Sequence record: NC_021529.2
DNA length: 64,000 nt
Direction: 5' to 3' (one strand)
Under the pieces are notes generated by a model. That model searched no databases, was not told the origin of the DNA, and worked only from the letters and a program-made list of their open reading frames with translations. Shown here piece by piece: positions 46,887 through 64,000 of this stretch (position 1 is its first letter; the number at the start of each line of letters is the position of its first letter). The position numbers and the translations under genes were made by a program.

Positions 46887-48242
46887 ATGAAGAAAGCTTT
46901 ACTTGCATTAGCATTAGTATGTTCTACGTCAGCGTCAGCATTTGATGGACTACCGACTAGTGGTGTAGAAACACCAAGTCCATTATCAACTGAATTCGCA
47001 TTCCCATATTTGACGAACGGTTATCACAACTCAGTTCTTCGTACATGGGTTAACACTGCCATGAAAGAAGCAGATGCAGAATTCCAAAAGACTGGTGAAA
47101 TCTCTCAAGTCGTCAACGAGAACTACATTTCGATGAACAGTTCTGGTTACAAATACTGGAATGATTCAGATGACAGAGCAACGACATCACCAGCAGCAGA
47201 TATGAAAGCGTTAAGCAATCTTGCAATGGCGCCACTGAAATGGGCTTGTACTGTATCAGGCGGCTGTTACGACAACGGCTACGAATACACACTTCGAATG
47301 AATGCTGATTCAAGCAACTTCGATGTAAACGGAACTTTGCATGTTGGGTGGGCAAACTTGCGTCGTGAAAGTTGTGCTCTTGCATACGGTGGTGTTCGAG
47401 TATGTACAACCATCGATGACATGAACTACGGTGGCGATCTAGCAGGCTTCTGGATCAAAGCAATTGATTGGATTAACGAGAAAGAAAATCTTTCAAACAT
47501 TCAAACATCGATTGATCAAGTGAAGAAAACATTTGACCGTCCGTATGTTACAGTGAACGCTACTCTAATCCCTGGTAAAGTATCTGGTGGTGATATTTCA
47601 TACTTCCATATGGCTGATCCAGAATGGTGGACTCTGTGGCAACGTCAAGTTAACTTGAACTCAGTTGCAATCGGGTACAAGCTAGGTCAAATTGAGCCGA
47701 TTCTAGCAGGCGACCATGCGGGTCTAAGACAGTCATATCTTCCGCAGGATGAGCAATGGGCTGGAAAATACGGTTCTCATCTAGCAGGTGCTTTACCGCT
47801 ATACGAATACAACCCATTGCGTGCGCTTGAAATCGTACACAGACAACGAATGCAGCTACCGTTAGGTGACTATGCACAATTCGACAACAACTATAAAGCG
47901 TGTCGAGTGAATCTGATGATGACTGGCGATGATGGTTACTTGCCGTCACCTGGGTATTACGGCGTAACAGCACTTTACGGTATAGCACCTCAATATACAC
48001 CAGTGCTTCAGCTAGCCACGTTCGCATGGTCAGCTAACACGAAGTCGCAGTCGAAGATGTACGAAATGGCAAACTATGATCACAACGCACGTGTGTTCCT
48101 ACACGAGCTAGGCCATAACTACGACTACGGTCACGATACAACACCGTCGGCAGACTCATACTGGAATGACCTGAGCGTAACAGTTCCATCATTCATCGAT
48201 GACCGTCGCAGCGACGATCAGTGCGTAAACCGCGTACTTTAA
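46887..48242 (+). CDS. Secreted protein with C-terminal HExxH metallopeptidase motif
   Basis: Sec signal MKKALLALALVCSTSASA; VFLHELGHNYDYGH; own promoter (46780-46808) and terminator (about 48250-48270). Confidence 0.75.
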   Translation: MKKALLALALVCSTSASAFDGLPTSGVETPSPLSTEFAFPYLTNGYHNSVLRTWVNTAMKEADAEFQKTGEISQVVNENYISMNSSGYKYWNDSDDRATTSPAADMKALSNLAMAPLKWACTVSGGCYDNGYEYTLRMNADSSNFDVNGTLHVGWANLRRESCALAYGGVRVCTTIDDMNYGGDLAGFWIKAIDWINEKENLSNIQTSIDQVKKTFDRPYVTVNATLIPGKVSGGDISYFHMADPEWWTLWQRQVNLNSVAIGYKLGQIEPILAGDHAGLRQSYLPQDEQWAGKYGSHLAGALPLYEYNPLRALEIVHRQRMQLPLGDYAQFDNNYKACRVNLMMTGDDGYLPSPGYYGVTALYGIAPQYTPVLQLATFAWSANTKSQSKMYEMANYDHNARVFLHELGHNYDYGHDTTPSADSYWNDLSVTVPSFIDDRRSDDQCVNRVL

Positions 48243-51843: not shown

Positions 51844-51974
51844 ACTGAAGCATATATAAGTCTCTAATGAACATAATGCATCAATTATGAGTCATTAGAG
51901 ACTTATTTTACCTTTAATGTGTTTAAAATGATACATTAACGATTATAATAATGCTTTAACACAAGAGACGTATT

Positions 51975-52907
51975 ATGAAAAGCACAATGTTTTTGAACAA
52001 CATCACGGTTATCGATCACGCATGGGTAGATGATGTTGGTGAAATTAATGGTAATAGCTACAATCTTTGTGTAGAAATTACAGGCGAAGTCGATGAAACT
52101 GAACAAGTTGTCATCGACTTTAGTGGTTGCAAAAAAGCAATCAAACAACTTGTAGACGAATCGAAATTCGCTCTAGATCACCGACTAGTCATCGTTGACG
52201 GATTCAGCGACGCTGTTCTGTCACTCGTTGAAGATCGTGATCGCATTCAAATAAATACGCCAGTTTTTCATGCTGTATCAACAGTAGATGATTGGTATCA
52301 AGTCATCACACCAAGCGAATTAATTGAAGCAGATTTCAAAATCCCAAGCGATTCGCTTTACATGAACTACGTAACTGAATATCTCGAAGATATGCTACTG
52401 ACACAACTTAGAGAACAAGGTTACCCAGTCACATACGTAGCAGTAGAGCTATCAGAGAAGTTTGACTTACCATCGTGGGCTAACAGTCACGTTGAATTCA
52501 ATTACGCTCACGGGCTGCGTTCAAGTACTTCATACGGGTGTCAGAATATCGCTCATGGTCATCGTTCATTCATTGCAGTTGATAACCACTTGAACAGCAA
52601 CGGTCGCAAGGTACTGAAGCGCATTGCAAAAGAAATGAGCGGCTATCTAGCATGGTCAGACAACATTCGCAAAGAAGATGAAGTATCATACACATCACAG
52701 CGCGGGAATTTCTATTTACGACATGAGAACATCAAAGTCATCCCGACTGAAACGACGGTTGAGAATCTAGCAAGCTATATTGCATCAACATACGAAGAAG
52801 ATTTTCAGCGTATGGGTGTTCAGCGAGTTTGGGTTTCTGAAGGTCTTTCGAAAGGGGCGGTTGTTGATATCAAGTTAAACAAAGCACTTTTAGGTAGAAA
52901 TGCATGA
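51975..52907 (+). CDS. queD: QueD-like 6-carboxytetrahydropterin synthase (long, two-domain T-fold type)
   Basis: IDHAW, VIDFS..KK.IK, ALDHRL, AHGL...IAHGHRS, PTETTVENLA; next to folE. Confidence 0.75.
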   Translation: MKSTMFLNNITVIDHAWVDDVGEINGNSYNLCVEITGEVDETEQVVIDFSGCKKAIKQLVDESKFALDHRLVIVDGFSDAVLSLVEDRDRIQINTPVFHAVSTVDDWYQVITPSELIEADFKIPSDSLYMNYVTEYLEDMLLTQLREQGYPVTYVAVELSEKFDLPSWANSHVEFNYAHGLRSSTSYGCQNIAHGHRSFIAVDNHLNSNGRKVLKRIAKEMSGYLAWSDNIRKEDEVSYTSQRGNFYLRHENIKVIPTETTVENLASYIASTYEEDFQRMGVQRVWVSEGLSKGAVVDIKLNKALLGRNA

Positions 52908-53584
52908 ATAGCGTACAAGATAAATCAGTTCTAATGGGTGATGAATTACTTTTCAGTGAAAGCGAATGGGTTCCATTCGATACGATGAACACTGAAAAGA
53001 AAATTCTATCAAACCCAATATTCGACGAAGGTCTGAACAGAATTATCAAGCAGTACACTCCGAAAACAGACACAGCGTTTATTTCGCTGTGTACTACTAC
53101 TCGACCATATGAAAATAGTCGCAAGTGGAAAACGTTCATGGAAACGTTTGGTAGTAGTGCTGACTTGATTGTTATTTCGAACGGCGGGGTAATACCACAG
53201 CAGTTTTGGCACAGTTATCCGTATCTGAACTACGATGGTGACCCAAAAGTCAATCCACAAACTGAACTTTATTGTGAAATCTGTGAAGAACGTGTTTATC
53301 GTTTCTTCAGTCAGGTGAAGTTCAAAAACATCGTCGCGAACTTTAAGCACGTACAACGTAACACTGAAGCAATCAAGAGCGCGTTGAAGCGACTTAAAGA
53401 CGACGGTCACATTGAAAACTATGTTGTTCTACCAACTGTTGAGCAGTATGAAGAATTGCAGTCTCGTGGGTTCCCGAAAGGGAAAGTTTTCCCAGATGTC
53501 GATGATAAGATACTTGAACACTTGCGTTCGGCAGTACATTCGTACTCGCCACCGAAAGAAAATAGCTTAGCTAACTTCTTTTAG
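52904..53584 (+). CDS. ArcS/DUF5591-like protein
   Basis: FISLCTTTRPYENSRKW and VISNGGVIP..F..SYP..NYD resemble the archaeosine synthase core; position in cluster. Confidence 0.6.
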   Translation: MNSVQDKSVLMGDELLFSESEWVPFDTMNTEKKILSNPIFDEGLNRIIKQYTPKTDTAFISLCTTTRPYENSRKWKTFMETFGSSADLIVISNGGVIPQQFWHSYPYLNYDGDPKVNPQTELYCEICEERVYRFFSQVKFKNIVANFKHVQRNTEAIKSALKRLKDDGHIENYVVLPTVEQYEELQSRGFPKGKVFPDVDDKILEHLRSAVHSYSPPKENSLANFF

Positions 53585-53640
53585 TGTTTAAATACAACTC
53601 TCATCGTGTATAATACATTCTCAACAAGTGAGGAAATAGA

Positions 53641-54315
53641 ATGGCATTTAATAAAGAGAAATGCGACGCTGAACTAGGTCGCAAAATTGAAGAACATCTT
53701 CGTGAAATCGGTATGAACACACCAATGCGTGAAGATAACGGTATCACTGATGATGTGAAAATTCAATACATCGAATCGTCTTTCACTGACATCATGAATG
53801 TGTTGGGTTTAGATTTATCTGACGATTCGCTTGTTGACACGCCACGTCGTGTAGCAAAAATGCTAGTTAAAGAGACAATGTGGGGTCTGAAGCCAGAGAA
53901 CTTTCCTAAGTGTACTGCAATCGACAACAAGATGAACTACGATGAGATTGTATGTGAAACTGGTATTACTGTCATGTCGCAGTGTGAACATCACTTCGTG
54001 ACAATTGATGGTAAAGCAACAGTTGCTTACATCCCTAACAAGAAAGTTCTTGGCTTGTCTAAGATGAATCGCATTGTTGAGTATTTCAGTCGTCGCCCTC
54101 AAGTGCAAGAGCGTTTAACGATTCAAATCGCTGAAGCTCTAAAGCTTATCTTAGAAACTGACAACGTAGCAGTAGTTCTAGACTGTGAACACTATTGTGT
54201 TAAGTCTCGTGGCGTTGAAGATCACACATCAAGCACGGTGACAAGTAGCTTGTCTGGTGTGTTTCGAACAAAGCCCGAAGCACGTGCTGAGTTCATGGCA
54301 CTAGCAAGAAAGTAA
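53641..54315 (+). CDS. folE: GTP cyclohydrolase I
   Basis: DTPRRVAKM, SQCEHHF, VLGLSK, RRPQVQERLT, HYCVKSRG. Confidence 0.97.
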   Translation: MAFNKEKCDAELGRKIEEHLREIGMNTPMREDNGITDDVKIQYIESSFTDIMNVLGLDLSDDSLVDTPRRVAKMLVKETMWGLKPENFPKCTAIDNKMNYDEIVCETGITVMSQCEHHFVTIDGKATVAYIPNKKVLGLSKMNRIVEYFSRRPQVQERLTIQIAEALKLILETDNVAVVLDCEHYCVKSRGVEDHTSSTVTSSLSGVFRTKPEARAEFMALARK

Positions 54316-54400
54316 ATCAGAAACGCACATTATGTGCGTTTTTTTGTTTAAGTAGTTCATAAAAATGATAATATAATTGAGCTAACAAGAGAGGTTTACA

Positions 54401-55795
54401 TTGATTATTGAATACGTAATGTCAGCGACTGGACATGCTCGTCTTAGTACTGCATATAAGCTTAGAGATAAAGTTGATATAACTTATCTCCGAGACATTT
54501 TAAACGCTGCACAAAACTTAGACGGCGTTCACAAGATCAGTATGCTTTATAACGCATACACTGAGAAGAAAATTGGTCGAGAACTGCGTGAGATTTTTGG
54601 TGATTCAGTTTACAAGATTCACGTTGACTCTGGCGGTCTACAGATGATCACCCTCGGACTCGACAACACACCAGAATTACGTGCTGGTGTTTACAAGAAT
54701 CAAGCAGAATCTGGTGACATTGGTATGTGTTTCGATGAAATCCCAATTCACAACACGTCGAAAGGTGGTGGTGCTGCACGATTAAACGCGAACGATAAAG
54801 TATTCATCAGCGACATGGCATATGAATATGGTGTTCGTTCTGGCAAGAACATCAAAGATCAGATAGAAGCATATCTTGCAGATGAAAGTCAGTGCAAACC
54901 GTATGTAATCTTTCATGGTAACACTGAAGAAGACTACATGAATTACTGTGATGGTATGATGTCTCAGCTTAAAGGGCTTGAGCATCACATTGCTGGCTGT
55001 GCGGTTTCTGGTGCTGCGATTGGGTATGATTCTCGTGAAACAATCGACATGATGAGCGTTGTTCGTAAACTGAACATCCCAGAACACATCAAAAAGTCTG
55101 TTCACATGCTTGGGTTTGGTTCTGTCAAGCGTCTACTACCGTCTATCGCTCTTATACGCAGCGGTTACTTCGGTGACGACTTTCATATCAGCTACGACTC
55201 TTCGACTCACACGGGCTGTTTGACGAATCGTGAGTACACGGATAAGCTTGGTCGTCGAATTAAGATTGAGGGACGCCCGCAGAAGAAGAACAAAGATGTT
55301 CAAGACGCATTTTCTATGATGCTGAATGCTCGTAACCCAGGCAGTGCGGTTGATGAATCGAAAGACTCTGAATCAACAGAGCTTCTTGACAACATGTTGT
55401 CTGAAGTATGGGGTCGATTCTCACATGTAATTCCGCGTTCTGAATCTGAATTCAAAGATTTTGCAACTAAAATGTGGTTTAAGAAGCTGAATCGAGAATC
55501 GTTATCAGAAGAAGATCAAGTGTTTGAAGTTGCATGTAATCTGTGTATCATTCTTTCACAAATCCTCAACTTTCAAGCGATTGTTTCTGAAGCATTCGAC
55601 TTGGACACTGATGGTAAAGAACGTGACGGGTTCGTCAAATGGTCGTCTAAACGTCGAATGTCAGTGCTTGATGACATCATCACGCATGATTCTCCAGAAG
55701 ACTTTGAGAACTGGTACAAGAATAACAGCAAACAATTGCCGTCTATTCGTATTCGACGCGGTACAACTGCTGAATACCCAGATTTTAAATCATAA
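54401..55795 (+). CDS. dpdA: DpdA-like (TGT-fold) DNA guanine transglycosylase
   Basis: VDSGGLQM, MCFDEIP, HMLGFG, SYDSST match TGT catalytic positions; no C-terminal CxCxxC zinc motif. Confidence 0.8.
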   Translation: MIIEYVMSATGHARLSTAYKLRDKVDITYLRDILNAAQNLDGVHKISMLYNAYTEKKIGRELREIFGDSVYKIHVDSGGLQMITLGLDNTPELRAGVYKNQAESGDIGMCFDEIPIHNTSKGGGAARLNANDKVFISDMAYEYGVRSGKNIKDQIEAYLADESQCKPYVIFHGNTEEDYMNYCDGMMSQLKGLEHHIAGCAVSGAAIGYDSRETIDMMSVVRKLNIPEHIKKSVHMLGFGSVKRLLPSIALIRSGYFGDDFHISYDSSTHTGCLTNREYTDKLGRRIKIEGRPQKKNKDVQDAFSMMLNARNPGSAVDESKDSESTELLDNMLSEVWGRFSHVIPRSESEFKDFATKMWFKKLNRESLSEEDQVFEVACNLCIILSQILNFQAIVSEAFDLDTDGKERDGFVKWSSKRRMSVLDDIITHDSPEDFENWYKNNSKQLPSIRIRRGTTAEYPDFKS

Positions 55796-55870
55796 GTTGT
55801 TTAATATATCATGAAATTGGCTATAATGAGTGTTCAGGATGAGCACTCAATAGCTTCGAGAGGTTATAAA

Positions 55871-56587
55871 ATGAAAGTAGTTTCTGTTTTAAGCGGTGGT
55901 CTTGACAGTACAATTCTCACATACAAGCTAGTAAATGATTTCGGTGCAGACAATGTGTTTGCTCTATCGTTCTACTACGGTCAAAAACAGTCAATTGAGC
56001 TAGAAAAAGCTAAGTTGACGTGTCAAAAGCTCGGCATCGAGCATCGTCTAATCGATATTTCGTTCTTAGGTGAAGTTGTAGCGCCAGTCTGTGCGAATAT
56101 CGCAGGCTCAGAAGTTGCAATGCCGACTATTCAAGACGTTCTAGGCGACCCTCAGCCGCCAACTGAAGTTCCATATCGTAACATGCTATTGAATACAATT
56201 GCGTTCTCGTTTGCTCAAGCAAATGGTTGTTCTGCTGTGTTCACTGGCATTCAAGTGCATGACGCATACGGGTATTGGGACTGTACACAAGACTTCCTTG
56301 ATGGTATGAATCAAATCTCATCGTTGAATCGCCAGCATGAAATCACACTACACGCACCGTTTGCTCAGATGTCAAAAGCAGATGAAATCAAGATTGGTCT
56401 TCTGCTAGGTGTCCCGTTCGAAGATAGTCTAACTTGTTACGACCCGAACGAAGCAGGTGAAAGTTGTGGTGTATGTCCATCATGTGCTGAACGCATCATG
56501 AACTTTGGCAAAGTCGGCATCAAAGATTCTGCGCCATATTCGAAACATATCCCATGGGAACAAGTATTTGCTAAGGCAGGTCATTAA
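55871..56587 (+). CDS. queC: 7-cyano-7-deazaguanine (preQ0) synthase
   Basis: VLSGGLDST, YGQKQ..EL, VPYRN, YWDC, CY...CGVCPSC.ER. Confidence 0.96.
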   Translation: MKVVSVLSGGLDSTILTYKLVNDFGADNVFALSFYYGQKQSIELEKAKLTCQKLGIEHRLIDISFLGEVVAPVCANIAGSEVAMPTIQDVLGDPQPPTEVPYRNMLLNTIAFSFAQANGCSAVFTGIQVHDAYGYWDCTQDFLDGMNQISSLNRQHEITLHAPFAQMSKADEIKIGLLLGVPFEDSLTCYDPNEAGESCGVCPSCAERIMNFGKVGIKDSAPYSKHIPWEQVFAKAGH

Positions 56588-57195
56588 TGTGCGGTTTATT
56601 TGCTGCTAGAAGCAAGCAAGAGCTTATTGAATTATCAAAAAGCAATCTACATCGTGGTTCGCGTACTCACTCTGTGAGTACGTTTAAGAACGGTCACGTG
56701 TCAGTACATAAATTCACTGGTGCATTCGATCCTGTCAATGTCCCTGACAGTGCAGATTTCTATATCTGTCACGTACAAGCACCAACTGGAACTAGTGCGC
56801 AAGCACATCCAGCTATTGTAACAGTCGATGAGAACGGTCAGTTACACGACTCACACGTGTGGCATAATGGCATTCTCAAAGATCATTACATGAAAAAGCA
56901 GACTCAAGATTGGGATACTGCACACATTGCTGAAGCTATTTGCTATGGCAAATTGAATGAGCTTGACGGTACATTCGCGTGTTTTCACTTCATCAACGGC
57001 AATTTACGTGTGTTTCGTAATGAAATCAGCCCGTTGTTCATGAACGAAGACGGCACAGCATTCAGTAGCACTAAGACGATTCTAACACCGTATCATGTTG
57101 ATGCGAATAAAGTGTTTAATATCGACTTGCGAACATTTAAACTATCGGTAGTGAGTGAGTTCAAGACACTCGAAAATCCATATTTCTTTTTGTAA
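56587..57195 (+). CDS. Stand-alone class II (Ntn) glutamine amidotransferase
   Basis: N-terminal MCG, CHVQAPT, WHNGIL, WDT, DGTFA; TAATG coupling to queC. Confidence 0.85.
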   Translation: MCGLFAARSKQELIELSKSNLHRGSRTHSVSTFKNGHVSVHKFTGAFDPVNVPDSADFYICHVQAPTGTSAQAHPAIVTVDENGQLHDSHVWHNGILKDHYMKKQTQDWDTAHIAEAICYGKLNELDGTFACFHFINGNLRVFRNEISPLFMNEDGTAFSSTKTILTPYHVDANKVFNIDLRTFKLSVVSEFKTLENPYFFL

Positions 57196-59581: not shown

Positions 59582-60565
59582 ATGAGCTTTGTGAAATACA
59601 CATCATTAGAAAACAGCTACCGTCAAGCATTCGTAGACAAATGCGACATGCTTGGCGTTCGTGATTGGGTCGCACTTGAGAAGATTCACGGTGCGAACTT
59701 CAGCTTCATCGTCGAATTCGACGGTGGGTACACTGTAACGCCCGCTAAGCGTACTTCTATCATCGGCGCTACTGCTACTGGAGATTACGACTTCTACGGC
59801 TGTACGAGCGTTGTAGAAGCTCACAAAGAGAAAGTAGAATTAGTCGCAAATTTCTTGTGGTTGAATGAGTACATCAATTTGTATGAGCCGATCATCATCT
59901 ACGGTGAGCTTGCAGGTAAAGGCATTCAGAAAGAAGTCAACTACGGTGACAAAGATTTCTGGGCGTTTGACATCTTCTTACCACAACGTGAAGAGTTCGT
60001 CGATTGGGATACGTGTGTTGCAGCATTCACAAACGCTGAGATCAAATACACGAAAGAACTTGCTCGTGGTACACTCGATGAGTTGCTTCGCATCGATCCT
60101 CTATTTAAGAGCTTACACACGCCAGCAGAGCACGAAGGCGATAACGTAGCAGAAGGGTTCGTTGTTAAGCAATTGCACTCTGAGAAACGCTTACAGAGCG
60201 GCTCACGTGCGATCTTGAAGGTCAAGAACGAGAAGTTCAAAGAGAAAAAGAAAAAAGAAGGTAAAACGCCGACTAAACTTGTTCTCACTCCTGAGCAAGA
60301 GAAGCTTCACGCTGAGTTTAGCTGCTACTTGACAGAAAACCGTTTGAAAAACGTACTAAGTAAGTTAGGTACTGTGAATCAGAAACAGTTTGGCATGATT
60401 AGCGGTCTATTTGTCAAAGACGCCAAAGATGAGTTTGAGCGTGACGAACTCAACGAAGTAGCGATTGATCGTGACGACTGGAACGCAATCAGACGTTCAT
60501 TAACGAATATCGCCAACGAAATCTTACGCAAGAATTGGTTGAATATTCTCGATGGGAACTTCTAA
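59582..60565 (+). CDS. rnlB: RNA ligase 2
   Basis: EKIHGANFS, KRT, YGELAG, AFDI, EGFVVK, ILKVKNEKF. Confidence 0.96.
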   Translation: MSFVKYTSLENSYRQAFVDKCDMLGVRDWVALEKIHGANFSFIVEFDGGYTVTPAKRTSIIGATATGDYDFYGCTSVVEAHKEKVELVANFLWLNEYINLYEPIIIYGELAGKGIQKEVNYGDKDFWAFDIFLPQREEFVDWDTCVAAFTNAEIKYTKELARGTLDELLRIDPLFKSLHTPAEHEGDNVAEGFVVKQLHSEKRLQSGSRAILKVKNEKFKEKKKKEGKTPTKLVLTPEQEKLHAEFSCYLTENRLKNVLSKLGTVNQKQFGMISGLFVKDAKDEFERDELNEVAIDRDDWNAIRRSLTNIANEILRKNWLNILDGNF

Positions 60566-60568
60566 TAA

Positions 60569-60763
60569 TTGAAAAAACGTGCTTGGTTCTTTGTTTTTTG
60601 TGGGATTGGGGCAATAAGCTACTTCGGTGGCTTATTCGTCGCGTCATTACTCATATTCGAATCTGTTGAAGCATCTATATTATTCATCATTCTAGTGTTT
60701 TTAGCTCTATTAAATACAGTCAGAGCAGGCATCGAAGATGATGAGAACAACAAAGCTCCTTAG
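60569..60763 (+). CDS. Hypothetical membrane protein
   Basis: Two TM-like segments. Confidence 0.55.
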   Translation: MKKRAWFFVFCGIGAISYFGGLFVASLLIFESVEASILFIILVFLALLNTVRAGIEDDENNKAP

Positions 60764-60778
60764 GGAGCTTTTTTATAG

Positions 60779-61327
60779 GTGAATGAAATGGCATTTTTGA
60801 AGAAAGAGAAAGACACAAAAGACATCACAGAAGCAGATATGCAGTACGCAATAGCAGTACAAAGCGTATGGATTCATAAACGCTATACAGCAGTAGTGCC
60901 TAACTGCTATACTAAATGGGATAACGAAGCAGACTTATTTGCTATTAGACCAAGTGGGTTGTGTGATGAGATTGAAATCAAGGTGTCTAAAGCTGACTTT
61001 CGAATCGATGAACAAAAGTCTGTTAAAGTGATTGACGAAAGTACACCGAATCTGCGTTGGCATCGTTATGAAGACGTTCCAAAACGCACAGCATTGCAAG
61101 ATGGAAAGATGAGCAACTACTTTTGGTATGCATTCCCTAAAGGGCTTGTAGACCATGCTGAAGTCCCAGAATGGGCAGGTATAATCGAAGTCGATGGGTT
61201 CTTAAATGCCAGAGAAGTTCGAATGCCAAAACGACTGCACGGTGGTAAGATGACACTCGAAGAGCAGTTAAAACAAATCAAGAAGCTGGGTTACCGTTTT
61301 TGGAATCTAGTTAAAAAGAACCGATAA
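60779..61327 (+). CDS. PD-(D/E)xK nuclease-fold protein (MmcB-like)
   Basis: EADLFAI...EIEIKVSKADF..D, NYFWYAFP, WAGII. Confidence 0.75.
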   Translation: MNEMAFLKKEKDTKDITEADMQYAIAVQSVWIHKRYTAVVPNCYTKWDNEADLFAIRPSGLCDEIEIKVSKADFRIDEQKSVKVIDESTPNLRWHRYEDVPKRTALQDGKMSNYFWYAFPKGLVDHAEVPEWAGIIEVDGFLNAREVRMPKRLHGGKMTLEEQLKQIKKLGYRFWNLVKKNR

Positions 61328-61339
61328 CAAGGAATAACA

Positions 61340-61648
61340 ATGAAAACTTTCAATGAATTTTTAGCTGAAGCTCAACACATGTATGAGCTACCACCTGGGT
61401 ATGAAGTATTCGGTCTAGTAGATGTAGATGGGAAAGAGGTTGAACTCCATTCAGACGATGTGATGCGTGACGAATTAACAAGAGTTGCAAACGCACGTAA
61501 CGTAGCTATTGCAACTGGTGGTGTTTCTTCAGAAGAAGCAGGTGTATTAATCACCAAAGGCGGTAAAGAAGTTGATTACTTCCCGCATGAAGATAAAGCA
61601 AGTGGTCCACGCTTTAAAAACTTCGTGAAACGTCACTTCAAGGTCTAA
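61340..61648 (+). CDS. Putative internal head protein
   Basis: MKTFNEFLAE/ closely matches the T4 IP capsid-targeting sequence MKTYQEFIAE. Confidence 0.7.
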   Translation: MKTFNEFLAEAQHMYELPPGYEVFGLVDVDGKEVELHSDDVMRDELTRVANARNVAIATGGVSSEEAGVLITKGGKEVDYFPHEDKASGPRFKNFVKRHFKV

Positions 61649-61662
61649 TCAGAAACGGATAA

Positions 61663-61738
61663 GGCGGAAAAATTCCGTCTCATCTTAGTAGTATTAGTAG
61701 TTTTAGTGAAGTTAGAGATATTAGAAGTATTAGGAGAT
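61663..61738. repeat. Hairpin plus six phased 9-bp TTAG repeats, copy 2
   Basis: GGCGGAA-AAA-TTCCGTC; TTAG at 61685, 61694, 61703, 61712, 61721, 61730. Confidence 0.9.
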
Positions 61739-61821
61739 TGAAAATAACTTGAAAAAGTTGTTGACAGTCTCCTTTTTGATCATACTATACAGTTATCGAA
61801 ACAAACTATTGAGTGAAGATT

Positions 61822-62346
61822 ATGAACTTGCGTGAACGTGAAGAAGAGCTAAAAGCACTATCAGTACATCCAGATGACGTTGAAATTGCTGTCACTGTAT
61901 CGTGTGCTGGTATGAGCAATCACTACACTGTCTGTCCTTTCGAGTTCAAAGACTTTTTAGACGAACATGAAGGTACATCCTATATAGCATTTGAATGGCA
62001 CAATTTCCCAAATGATTTGCAAGACGAAGAACTAGACTTCGATGAGTTAGATGCATTGTTCAGCCTCGAAGATAGTCAGCGTGAAATCTGCGAACTGTTA
62101 TACGATAATAGAGTTTGTATGTCTTATGAAGACGCTGCTGAGAAAGTCGAAGACTGTTGGGTGTTCGAAGGCACGAAAGAAGAATACGCAGAGCATGTAA
62201 CATCAGAGCTAATGGGAATTCGAAGTGAAGATATCCCTGCAATCTTACGCAGCAACATCAATTGGGGTGATGTATTCATCGATTTAGATGCTGACGGTAG
62301 CATCTTTGAATTATCACGAAACAGATACTTAACAGTGAATCAATAA
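61822..62346 (+). CDS. ArdA-like antirestriction protein
   Basis: Highly acidic; EEYAEHVTSELMG...IPAILRSNINWGDVFIDL resembles the ArdA C-terminal domain. Confidence 0.65.
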   Translation: MNLREREEELKALSVHPDDVEIAVTVSCAGMSNHYTVCPFEFKDFLDEHEGTSYIAFEWHNFPNDLQDEELDFDELDALFSLEDSQREICELLYDNRVCMSYEDAAEKVEDCWVFEGTKEEYAEHVTSELMGIRSEDIPAILRSNINWGDVFIDLDADGSIFELSRNRYLTVNQ

Positions 62347-62347
62347 T

Positions 62348-62920
62348 ATGAGTAGTACTAAAGGTAACGTCAACAAAGACGATTACTATGCTACACCATC
62401 TTGGATTGTTGAAGAGTTTCTACGCGAGTTTGAAGCTCGTATTCAACTCGATATGAGCATGGCAGAAATGTACGTGCTCGATCCATCGTGTGGTGGCTGT
62501 TCAGAACATGAAGCAGCGTATCCAGTAGCATACAAGAAAATGTATGGTGTTGACATCGACACGATGGATATTCGTGAAGATAGTCACGCTAATCTAATAG
62601 CGAATTATCTAGAAACAGATATCCCGGTCAAGTATTATGACATGATAATGACGAATCCGCCATTCAGCTTGTCTGTTGACTTTGCTGAGAAAGCACTTGC
62701 TGAGGTGAAATATGGTGGTTATGTTGTGATGTTGCAGCGTCTGAATTGGCTTGGTAGCATTAAGCGCAAACCGTTCTGGGACAAGATGCCATTAAAAGCT
62801 GTGCTTGTGCATCATCGCCGTCCGTCGTTTCACGGTACAAAAGGTACAGACTCGATTGAGTATGCTCATTTTGTGTTTCAGAAAGGGTACAATCAGTCTG
62901 CTAAATTGGTGGTGATATGA
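62348..62920 (+). CDS. DNA amino-methyltransferase (N6-A/N4-C type)
   Basis: DYYATP, VLDPSCGG, TNPPF. Confidence 0.9.
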   Translation: MSSTKGNVNKDDYYATPSWIVEEFLREFEARIQLDMSMAEMYVLDPSCGGCSEHEAAYPVAYKKMYGVDIDTMDIREDSHANLIANYLETDIPVKYYDMIMTNPPFSLSVDFAEKALAEVKYGGYVVMLQRLNWLGSIKRKPFWDKMPLKAVLVHHRRPSFHGTKGTDSIEYAHFVFQKGYNQSAKLVVI

Positions 62921-63804: not shown

Positions 63805-64000
63805 CTTGACACATGTTGTCAGTCGTGTATAATTCTCTTAAAACGGGAGAATACTATGATTGACAACATGATAAAAGACATGATTGAGTCTGAATTTGCA
63901 GTAGAAGACATCATTGACTGTCTAGTAAACCAGTACCAAATGCCTCACGATGAAGCGTTCGACGCATATCAAGAGGTGCTTAACGAAATGTGAGAAATAC

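Follow-up and report, generated by a model that had tools for sequence, protein, structure and literature searches.

The final 64 kb of the genome record of Vibrio phage nt-1 (NC_021529.2), hereafter the window (64000 nucleotides, position 64000 being the last base of the record), carries six genes between positions 51975 and 57195 that constitute the published dpdA2/arcS2 7-deazaguanine DNA-modification cluster of this phage. The last of these genes, here called gat, encodes a predicted free-standing glutamine amidotransferase that probably acts as the partner of QueC, the synthase of 7-cyano-7-deazaguanine (preQ0). We put the probability of this overall reading, a published cluster with Gat as partner of QueC, at roughly 0.65. 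The region is 100% identical to record positions 235486-240706, the annotation of the record agrees with it, and the cluster is therefore the one already known as the DpdA2/ArcS2 reference case, described in 2019 (Hutinet et al. 2019, PMC6884629) and reconstituted in 2023 (Cui, Hutinet et al. 2023, PMC10516641). In the open reading frame (ORF) map all six genes lie closely packed on the plus strand in the order queD, arcS2, folE, dpdA2, queC, gat. Profile E-values reach 1e-90, and the gene matches together with the tight co-oriented packing are well above chance. Positions below are those of the window unless the record is named.

51975-52907, + strand: QueD-like protein, 310 amino acids (VPFG_00168, YP_008125319), matching Pfam PTPS
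52904-53584, + strand: ArcS2, 226 amino acids (VPFG_00169, YP_008125320), matching PF17884/DUF5591, its start overlapping the queD stop
53641-54315, + strand: FolE, GTP cyclohydrolase I, 224 amino acids (VPFG_00170), matching NF006824
54401-55795, + strand: DpdA2, 464 amino acids with a TTG start (VPFG_00171, YP_008125322), assigned by fold match and as the published reference
55871-56587, + strand: QueC (exsB), preQ0 synthase, 238 amino acids (VPFG_00172), matching TIGR00364
56587-57195, + strand: Gat, 202 amino acids (VPFG_00173, YP_008125324), annotated as hypothetical, a predicted class II (N-terminal nucleophile, Ntn) amidotransferase

A first-pass annotation made from the letters alone had called six co-oriented genes here; all are present on the plus strand, and the two limits that it gave are exactly the first position of queD and the last position of gat. 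The link to Vibrio phage nt-1 that it mentioned is likewise correct, the DNA being that of nt-1 itself, and the separate Gat gene that it proposed is borne out by the N-terminal cysteine, the HNG motif and the structural model described next.

Searches with the single nt-1 Gat sequence gave no Pfam match up to E = 1, no NCBIfam match and no match among PDB sequences, and its assignment comes from its family and its predicted structure. The protein begins with MCG and contains the motifs HRG, WHNG and DGTFA, and an alignment of the family (n = 25) has Met1, Cys2, Arg23-Gly24, His93-Asn94-Gly95 and Asp110 invariant. A word-indexed search returned 27 relatives, including proteins with GATase_6 (PF13522) and GATase_7 (PF13537) domains; the homologue in Pseudomonas phage pf16 (tblastn E = 3e-27) scores above the cut-off of each model, with 39.9 against 27 and 32.6 against 25, respectively. 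As a profile the family matches the glutaminase domain of GlmS (E = 1e-4; 25.3 bits with E. coli GlmS) and PurF (E = 7e-3), and Arg23, Asn94-Gly95 and Asp110 of Gat align with Arg26, Asn98-Gly99 and Asp123 of GlmS. We take these GlmS residues, together with Arg73, which presumably binds the glutamine carboxylate, to be the oxyanion and glutamine-binding residues. A structural model of Gat has a pLDDT (predicted local distance difference test) of 92.5. Its best Foldseek match is PurF (2e-8, TM-score 0.59-0.69); the glutaminase domain of GlmS and EgtC come next, and among viral models it matches Gn_AT_II proteins. The family alignment and the model thus place the 202-amino-acid protein among the class II (Ntn) glutamine amidotransferases, as a stand-alone member with the predicted four-layer alpha-beta-beta-alpha Ntn fold. 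An exhaustive profile search found 320 cluster representatives of the family at E < 1e-30, nearly all 195-235 amino acids long, and 148 of the top 150 representatives have a length of about 155-235 amino acids; members of this large family are almost always free-standing. Two other identities considered for Gat (ORF392) were rejected: the missing QueE, in view of the Ntn fold, the absence of a CxxxCxxC motif and the location of QueE elsewhere, and DpdM, which belongs to DUF3109 and has a CxxxCxxCC motif (PMC10516641).

Gat is listed neither for nt-1 nor for its relatives in the 2019 gene table (PMC6884629), and in the 2023 main text the word “amidotransferase” occurs only where the fused Gat-QueC is described (PMC10516641). 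As judged from the 2019 table and the main texts, the free Gat appears to be the sole unreported detail of the cluster.

The distribution of Gat appears to follow QueC, not ArcS2. In nt-1 the queC stop and the gat start overlap as TAATG. Among phage records, tblastn found Gat in 51, and it lies directly behind queC in all of them (51/51), as it does in four of five metagenomic loci. The QueC-Gat pair is present in all four metagenomic T4-like contigs fetched via Gat homologues, whether or not QueF accompanies it. In a further contig, fetched via an ArcS2 homologue (L007), the two genes are not adjacent, Gat being located about 0.9 kb upstream of queC. The gene order is QueD-FolE-DpdA2-QueF-QueC-Gat in Vibrio phage VH7D and FolE-DpdA2-QueF-QueC-Gat in pf16. 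QueF is present and ArcS2 absent in most of the examined phage records with Gat, including phi-Grn1 and phi-ST2, in which Gat is 90.6% identical to that of nt-1 and the DNA contains dPreQ1 and mdPreQ1 with zero dG+ (G+, archaeosine). Between nt-1 and VH7D, QueC is 92% and Gat 91% identical, compared with about 75% for QueD and FolE and 61% for DpdA2.

QueC uses ammonia in both of its steps, and PP-loop amidoligases such as AsnB and NadE are commonly paired with a glutaminase. Our preferred view, held with moderate confidence and based on gene order and conservation, is that Gat is the glutaminase subunit of QueC, translationally coupled to it, and not a second G+ synthase. Gat would hydrolyze glutamine and pass the ammonia to QueC for the conversion, in two ATP-dependent steps, of 7-carboxy-7-deazaguanine (CDG) via 7-amido-7-deazaguanine (ADG) to preQ0. 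The pair would then be comparable to an asparagine synthetase B divided into two proteins, and phage preQ0 synthesis would be freed from a dependence on free ammonia.

Several observations weigh against this assignment or against the importance of the system. An invariant glutamine of Gat, Gln64, aligns with GlmS Arg73, so the substrate of Gat may differ from free glutamine. The QueC of nt-1 looks like any other ammonia-dependent QueC, and the E. coli enzyme needs no partner. Some DpdA2 phages (of Stenotrophomonas, Acidovorax and Xanthomonas) gave no Gat match by tblastn, and Gat is therefore not obligatory. The zero dG+ of phi-Grn1 and phi-ST2, which speaks for a role of Gat other than G+ synthesis, could be explained by a QueF drain combined with a DpdA2 that prefers 7-aminomethyl-7-deazaguanine (preQ1), and the fused Gat-QueC of phage 9g does lead to dG+. 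Finally, with at most 0.1% of G modified in nt-1, the protective value of the system is putative.

By liquid chromatography-tandem mass spectrometry (LC-MS/MS), nt-1 virion DNA contains dPreQ0, dADG and dG+ at 232, 72 and 44 per million nucleotides, each at most 0.11% of G (PMC6884629). The mixed output proposed in the first-pass annotation, consisting of dPreQ0, dG+ and possibly dADG, agrees with the values but recognizes what had already been published and infers nothing new. When nt-1 DpdA2 is expressed by itself in E. coli, plasmid DNA contains 926 or 1607 dPreQ0 per million nucleotides, and dG+ appears when ArcS2 is added, no Gat being supplied; no modification was detected in a queD deletion strain (PMC10516641). 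With ArcS2 the dPreQ0 falls from 926 to 0 and from 1607 to 11, and dG+ reaches just 4-7 per million (PMC10516641, Table 3), so that most of the dPreQ0 signal is unaccounted for upon co-expression. In the published scheme, DpdA2 exchanges guanine for preQ0 in double-stranded DNA after replication, and ArcS2, the C1 core of the archaeal archaeosine synthase alone, turns a small fraction of the preQ0 into the amidine G+. Two explanations of the missing signal offer themselves: DpdA2 uses the G+ base poorly, or ArcS2 has a product that was not monitored.

The DUF5591 protein, which received the name ArcS2 in the 2023 follow-up (Cui, Hutinet et al., PMC10516641), is a stand-alone PF17884 domain in the dpdA2 cluster (43.7 bits, cut-off 26). 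The full-length ArcS model NF040592 (575 positions, cut-off 440 bits) matches it at 30 bits, over model positions 283-399 only; the four-domain ArcS architecture (Nt, C1, C2, PUA) is absent, leaving the C1 core only. Its motif, LC-TTT-RPY-EN-S-RK-W compared with PC-x3-KPY-x2-S-x2-H in the C1 domain of ArcS, was termed “slightly degenerated” in the 2023 paper (PMC10516641), and within the eight-member ArcS2 subfamily the cysteine, the R/K-P-Y and a downstream K-W/Y are invariant. ArcS2 is rare: a survey of 50,697 phage records found it in nt-1 and CZ01 and in no other, apart from a weak archaeal virus match, and five metagenomic clusters contain it.

Archaeal ArcS makes preQ0-lysine, from which the radical S-adenosylmethionine (SAM) enzyme RaSEA is needed to reach G+, and the ArcS of T. 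kodakarensis transfers lysine even onto the preQ0 nucleoside. No nt-1-specific RaSEA-like radical SAM gene was found, record positions 105-183.5 kb having been left unscreened; the QueE-like gene and the twitch-domain radical SAM gene VPFG_00320 are both shared with relatives that lack ArcS2. VPFG_00320 was considered as the RaSEA partner of ArcS2 and rejected, being 85-90% conserved in those relatives. This gene (record 59964-61019; NF033640, 132 bits, below cut-off), which is conserved across KVP40-like phages, lies in a minus-strand operon (record 59964-62261) with an ORF of 89 amino acids and a weakly glycosyltransferase-like ORF of 327 amino acids.

The main product of ArcS2 could conceivably be an adduct of preQ0 with lysine or another amine in DNA, dG+ being a minor breakdown or side product, and such an adduct may have escaped targeted LC-MS/MS. 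We entertain this rather improbable possibility because more than 99% of dPreQ0 is lost for only 4-7 dG+ in the co-expression experiments, and because archaeal ArcS transfers lysine and nt-1 has yielded no dedicated RaSEA in the part of the record screened.

Two metagenomic contigs (L009:2404-8686 and L007:684-15032) each carry two ArcS2-type DUF5591 genes interleaved with two to three DpdA2-like paralogues, the order in L009 being GARS, DUF5591, DpdA2-like, DpdA2-like, DUF5591, DpdA2-like. Their pairs of a protein like tRNA-guanine transglycosylase (TGT) and a C1 core look like split archaeal ArcS. The repetition of DpdA2-like/DUF5591 pairs may mean that DNA is what the core domain acts on, with a TGT-like partner beside it.

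Three other explanations of Gat jointly retain a substantial minority of the probability, because QueF could mask G+ in the relatives and because the ArcS2 reconstitution is very inefficient. The one that survives best, although unlikely, is that Gat also or instead gives ammonia to ArcS2, G+ arising by direct amidination of preQ0 without RaSEA. The requirement of archaeal ArcS for RaSEA and the failure to find an nt-1-specific radical SAM gene in the screened part of the record would be accommodated in this way, and L007, with its two ArcS2 copies, has a Gat homologue too. However, Gat already belonged to the ancestral gene set of the QueF-type relatives, its coupling is to queC and not to arcS2, which lies 3 kb upstream, and ArcS2 makes dG+ in E. 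coli without Gat. Gat may nonetheless have a supporting role in the formation of G+ in nt-1.

It is slightly less likely still that QueC and the free Gat constitute a split Gat-QueC that is itself a G+ synthase, which would give nt-1 two parallel routes to archaeosine. The 9g Gat-QueC can stand in for QueC and, when expressed with DpdA in E. coli, gives dG+ at 9-18%; the nt-1 and 9g Gat are both class II, with an MC start and an HNG motif; nt-1 has no QueF, so that preQ0 is available; and the 4-7 dG+ per million obtained with ArcS2 as the only converting enzyme leaves room for a missing helper. Yet phi-Grn1 and phi-ST2 possess the closely similar QueC-Gat pair and have zero dG+, the dG+ of this lineage arises together with ArcS2, and the order queC then gat is opposite to that in the fusion. 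A derivation of the free Gat from the 9g Gat domain by splitting was also considered and rejected: 9g Gat-QueC scores 6.5 bits with the free-Gat profile, compared with 25 bits for E. coli GlmS, and hhalign gives a probability of 4%, the low 9g score pointing to independent recruitment of Gat and not to a split fusion.

The least likely of the three is that Gat is an Ntn amidohydrolase acting on a substrate other than glutamine, comparable with the gamma-glutamyl amidohydrolase EgtC, and loosely or not at all linked to the pathway, for although EgtC is among its fold matches, Gln64 replaces the GlmS arginine and nt-1 Gat has no Pfam GATase match of its own, the gene keeps its place behind queC in records that span Vibrio, Pseudomonas and metagenomic T4-like phages, the nucleophile cysteine, oxyanion Asn-Gly and aspartate are invariant in the family, and homologues pass the GATase_6 and GATase_7 cut-offs.

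The first-pass annotation had proposed Gat as a second preQ0-converting enzyme that divides the G+ work with ArcS. This is disfavored by the TAATG coupling to queC and the association of Gat with QueC and not with ArcS2, by the zero dG+ of phi-Grn1 and phi-ST2, and by the sufficiency of ArcS2 and DpdA2 in E. coli.

DpdA2 of nt-1 (YP_008125322) is the protein on which the DpdA2 subfamily was defined (Hutinet et al. 2019, PMC6884629). It has no Pfam or NCBIfam match, including no sequence match to the TGT superfamily model PF01702 or to solved TGT structures; against PDB sequences the single sequence found nothing and the family profile only noise. An hhalign comparison with 9g DpdA is weak (E = 0.05). 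The AlphaFold model, computed from an alignment of 32 sequences (pLDDT 89.3), has as its top PDB fold match the TGT 7ovs_C (E = 6e-7), with the TGT-like Cap10 second and generic TIM barrels after it. In all 32 sequences DSGGLQ (residues 76-81) and S-Y-D-S (264-267) are unchanged, the latter aligning with the CDSS motif of 9g DpdA in the weak hhalign match; we assume that they are the two catalytic-aspartate motifs of TGT. The fold match and the published HHpred result indicate that DpdA2 is a highly divergent enzyme of the TGT fold.

With 61% identity between nt-1 and VH7D (L003:2915-4291), DpdA2 is markedly less conserved than its cluster neighbors (74-92%, QueD being 75% identical) and the flanking ORFs (86-94%). 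This difference points to accelerated divergence or replacement of DpdA2, coinciding with the swap of QueF for ArcS2. In nt-1 and CZ01, QueF, which lies between dpdA2 and queC in the relatives, has been exchanged for ArcS2, which lies between queD and folE, and their DpdA2 has diverged to 61% identity, QueC and Gat remaining at about 91%. As judged from gene content and identity, the nt-1 lineage has retained the QueC-Gat unit, dropped QueF, acquired ArcS2 and remodeled DpdA2. Such a history agrees with the change from preQ1 to preQ0 specificity reported in the literature, the VH7D DpdA2 preferring preQ1 and the nt-1 enzyme accepting preQ0 but not preQ1 (PMC10516641).

Nt-1 encodes a complete preQ0 pathway, in which GTP is converted to preQ0 by FolE, a two-domain QueD, a distant QueE and QueC. 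The FolE-QueD-QueE-QueC route named in the first-pass annotation is therefore present in the phage as a whole, QueE alone lying outside both cluster and window. No CxxxCxxC motif occurs among window ORFs of at least 60 amino acids, and the QueE-like gene VPFG_00333 is found at record 70296-71171, about 165 kb from the cluster; the 2019 table lists the distant QueE of nt-1 as YP_008125479 (PMC6884629). The QueD-like protein has two T-fold domains, which match Pfam PTPS in two stretches (44.5 bits, cut-off 22.4). The QueD equivalog model matches only residues 22-73, with a score under its cut-off. The C-terminal domain has a C-x3-HGH motif, and the protein was listed as QueD in the 2019 supplement (VPFG_00168; PMC6884629). 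FolE scores 302.9 bits with NF006824 (cut-off 202) and matches Pfam GTP_cyclohydroI at E = 8e-60. QueC passes the equivalog TIGR00364 (168.6 bits, cut-off 150.3) and matches Pfam QueC at E = 8e-53, and also the Asn_synthase and NAD_synthase PP-loop models. Its start is most likely the ATG at 55871, because a GAGAGG ribosome-binding site precedes it and none precedes 55811, the start of a longer ORF that was rejected.

A consensus scan produced the following regulatory-like patterns around the cluster, but the total of promoter-like sites in the region was not higher than the shuffled expectation, and they are weak pattern matches.

51922-51949, + strand: promoter-like TTTAAA-N16-TATAAT upstream of queD
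53587-53614: promoter-like site, an identical match, upstream of folE
54319-54343, + strand: terminator-like hairpin just after folE, with an 11-pair stem, a 3-nucleotide loop and a T-run

A DNA methyltransferase, VPFG_00186, is annotated about 5 kb downstream of the cluster (62348-62920, + strand) and is also annotated in VH7D; by this annotation nt-1 has at least one more DNA-modification gene near the cluster. On the upstream side, a hypothetical ORF of 451 amino acids (46887-48242, + strand) has a C-terminal match to the M12 zinc metallopeptidase model Reprolysin_5 (residues 378-422, 29 bits against a cut-off of 27). ARAGORN found no tRNA or tmRNA gene within window positions 1-64000.

The new element is a modest one, namely the annotation and genomic behavior of the free Gat as an overlooked component of the pathway, coupled to queC in the examined T4-like DpdA2 phages of Vibrio and Pseudomonas and in hundreds of metagenomic clusters. 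If Gat is the glutaminase of QueC, phage preQ0 synthesis would be driven by glutamine, and reconstitutions without Gat may underestimate the output of the pathway. The 9g-type Gat-QueC would then represent a second, independent union of the two activities, which would bear on the origin of G+ synthase activity.

Compared with known systems, the cluster is identical in DNA to the published nt-1 DpdA2/ArcS2 system (PMC6884629, PMC10516641), of which YP_008125322 and VPFG_00169 are the reference proteins; the published assignments of FolE, QueD, QueC and the distant QueE agree with ours, and Gat is the gene unlisted there. The closest relatives are phages of the genus Schizotequatrovirus (KVP40, VH7D and phi-ST2), which share with nt-1 the backbone QueD-FolE-DpdA2-...-QueC-Gat and the flanking genes, with QueC and Gat 91-92% identical. 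Unlike nt-1, they have QueF between dpdA2 and queC, lack ArcS2 and possess a preQ1-preferring DpdA2 of 61% identity, and their DNA contains dPreQ1 and mdPreQ1 without dG+.

The Gat-QueC G+ synthase of Enterobacteria phage 9g and of Crenarchaeota likewise brings together, within a deazaguanine DNA-modification cluster, a Gat of class II and a PP-loop domain of the QueC type. There, however, the two form one polypeptide with Gat N-terminal, whereas nt-1 has two genes, queC and then gat, and the 9g Gat domain is not specifically related to that of nt-1. Archaeal ArcS-RaSEA has in common with ArcS2 the DUF5591/C1 core with its cysteine and (K/R)-P-Y. Unlike archaeal ArcS, ArcS2 has no Nt (TGT-like), C2 or PUA domain, shows the motif changes P to L, K to R and H to W, belongs to a DNA pathway and not to a tRNA pathway, and has no dedicated RaSEA in the screened part of the record. 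Although QueC and Gat, unlike asparagine synthetase B and glutamine-dependent NAD synthetase, are separate polypeptides whose coupling and ammonia channel are proposed only, the logic suggested for them is alike, namely that of an Ntn or other glutaminase feeding ammonia to a carboxylate-adenylating PP-loop enzyme.

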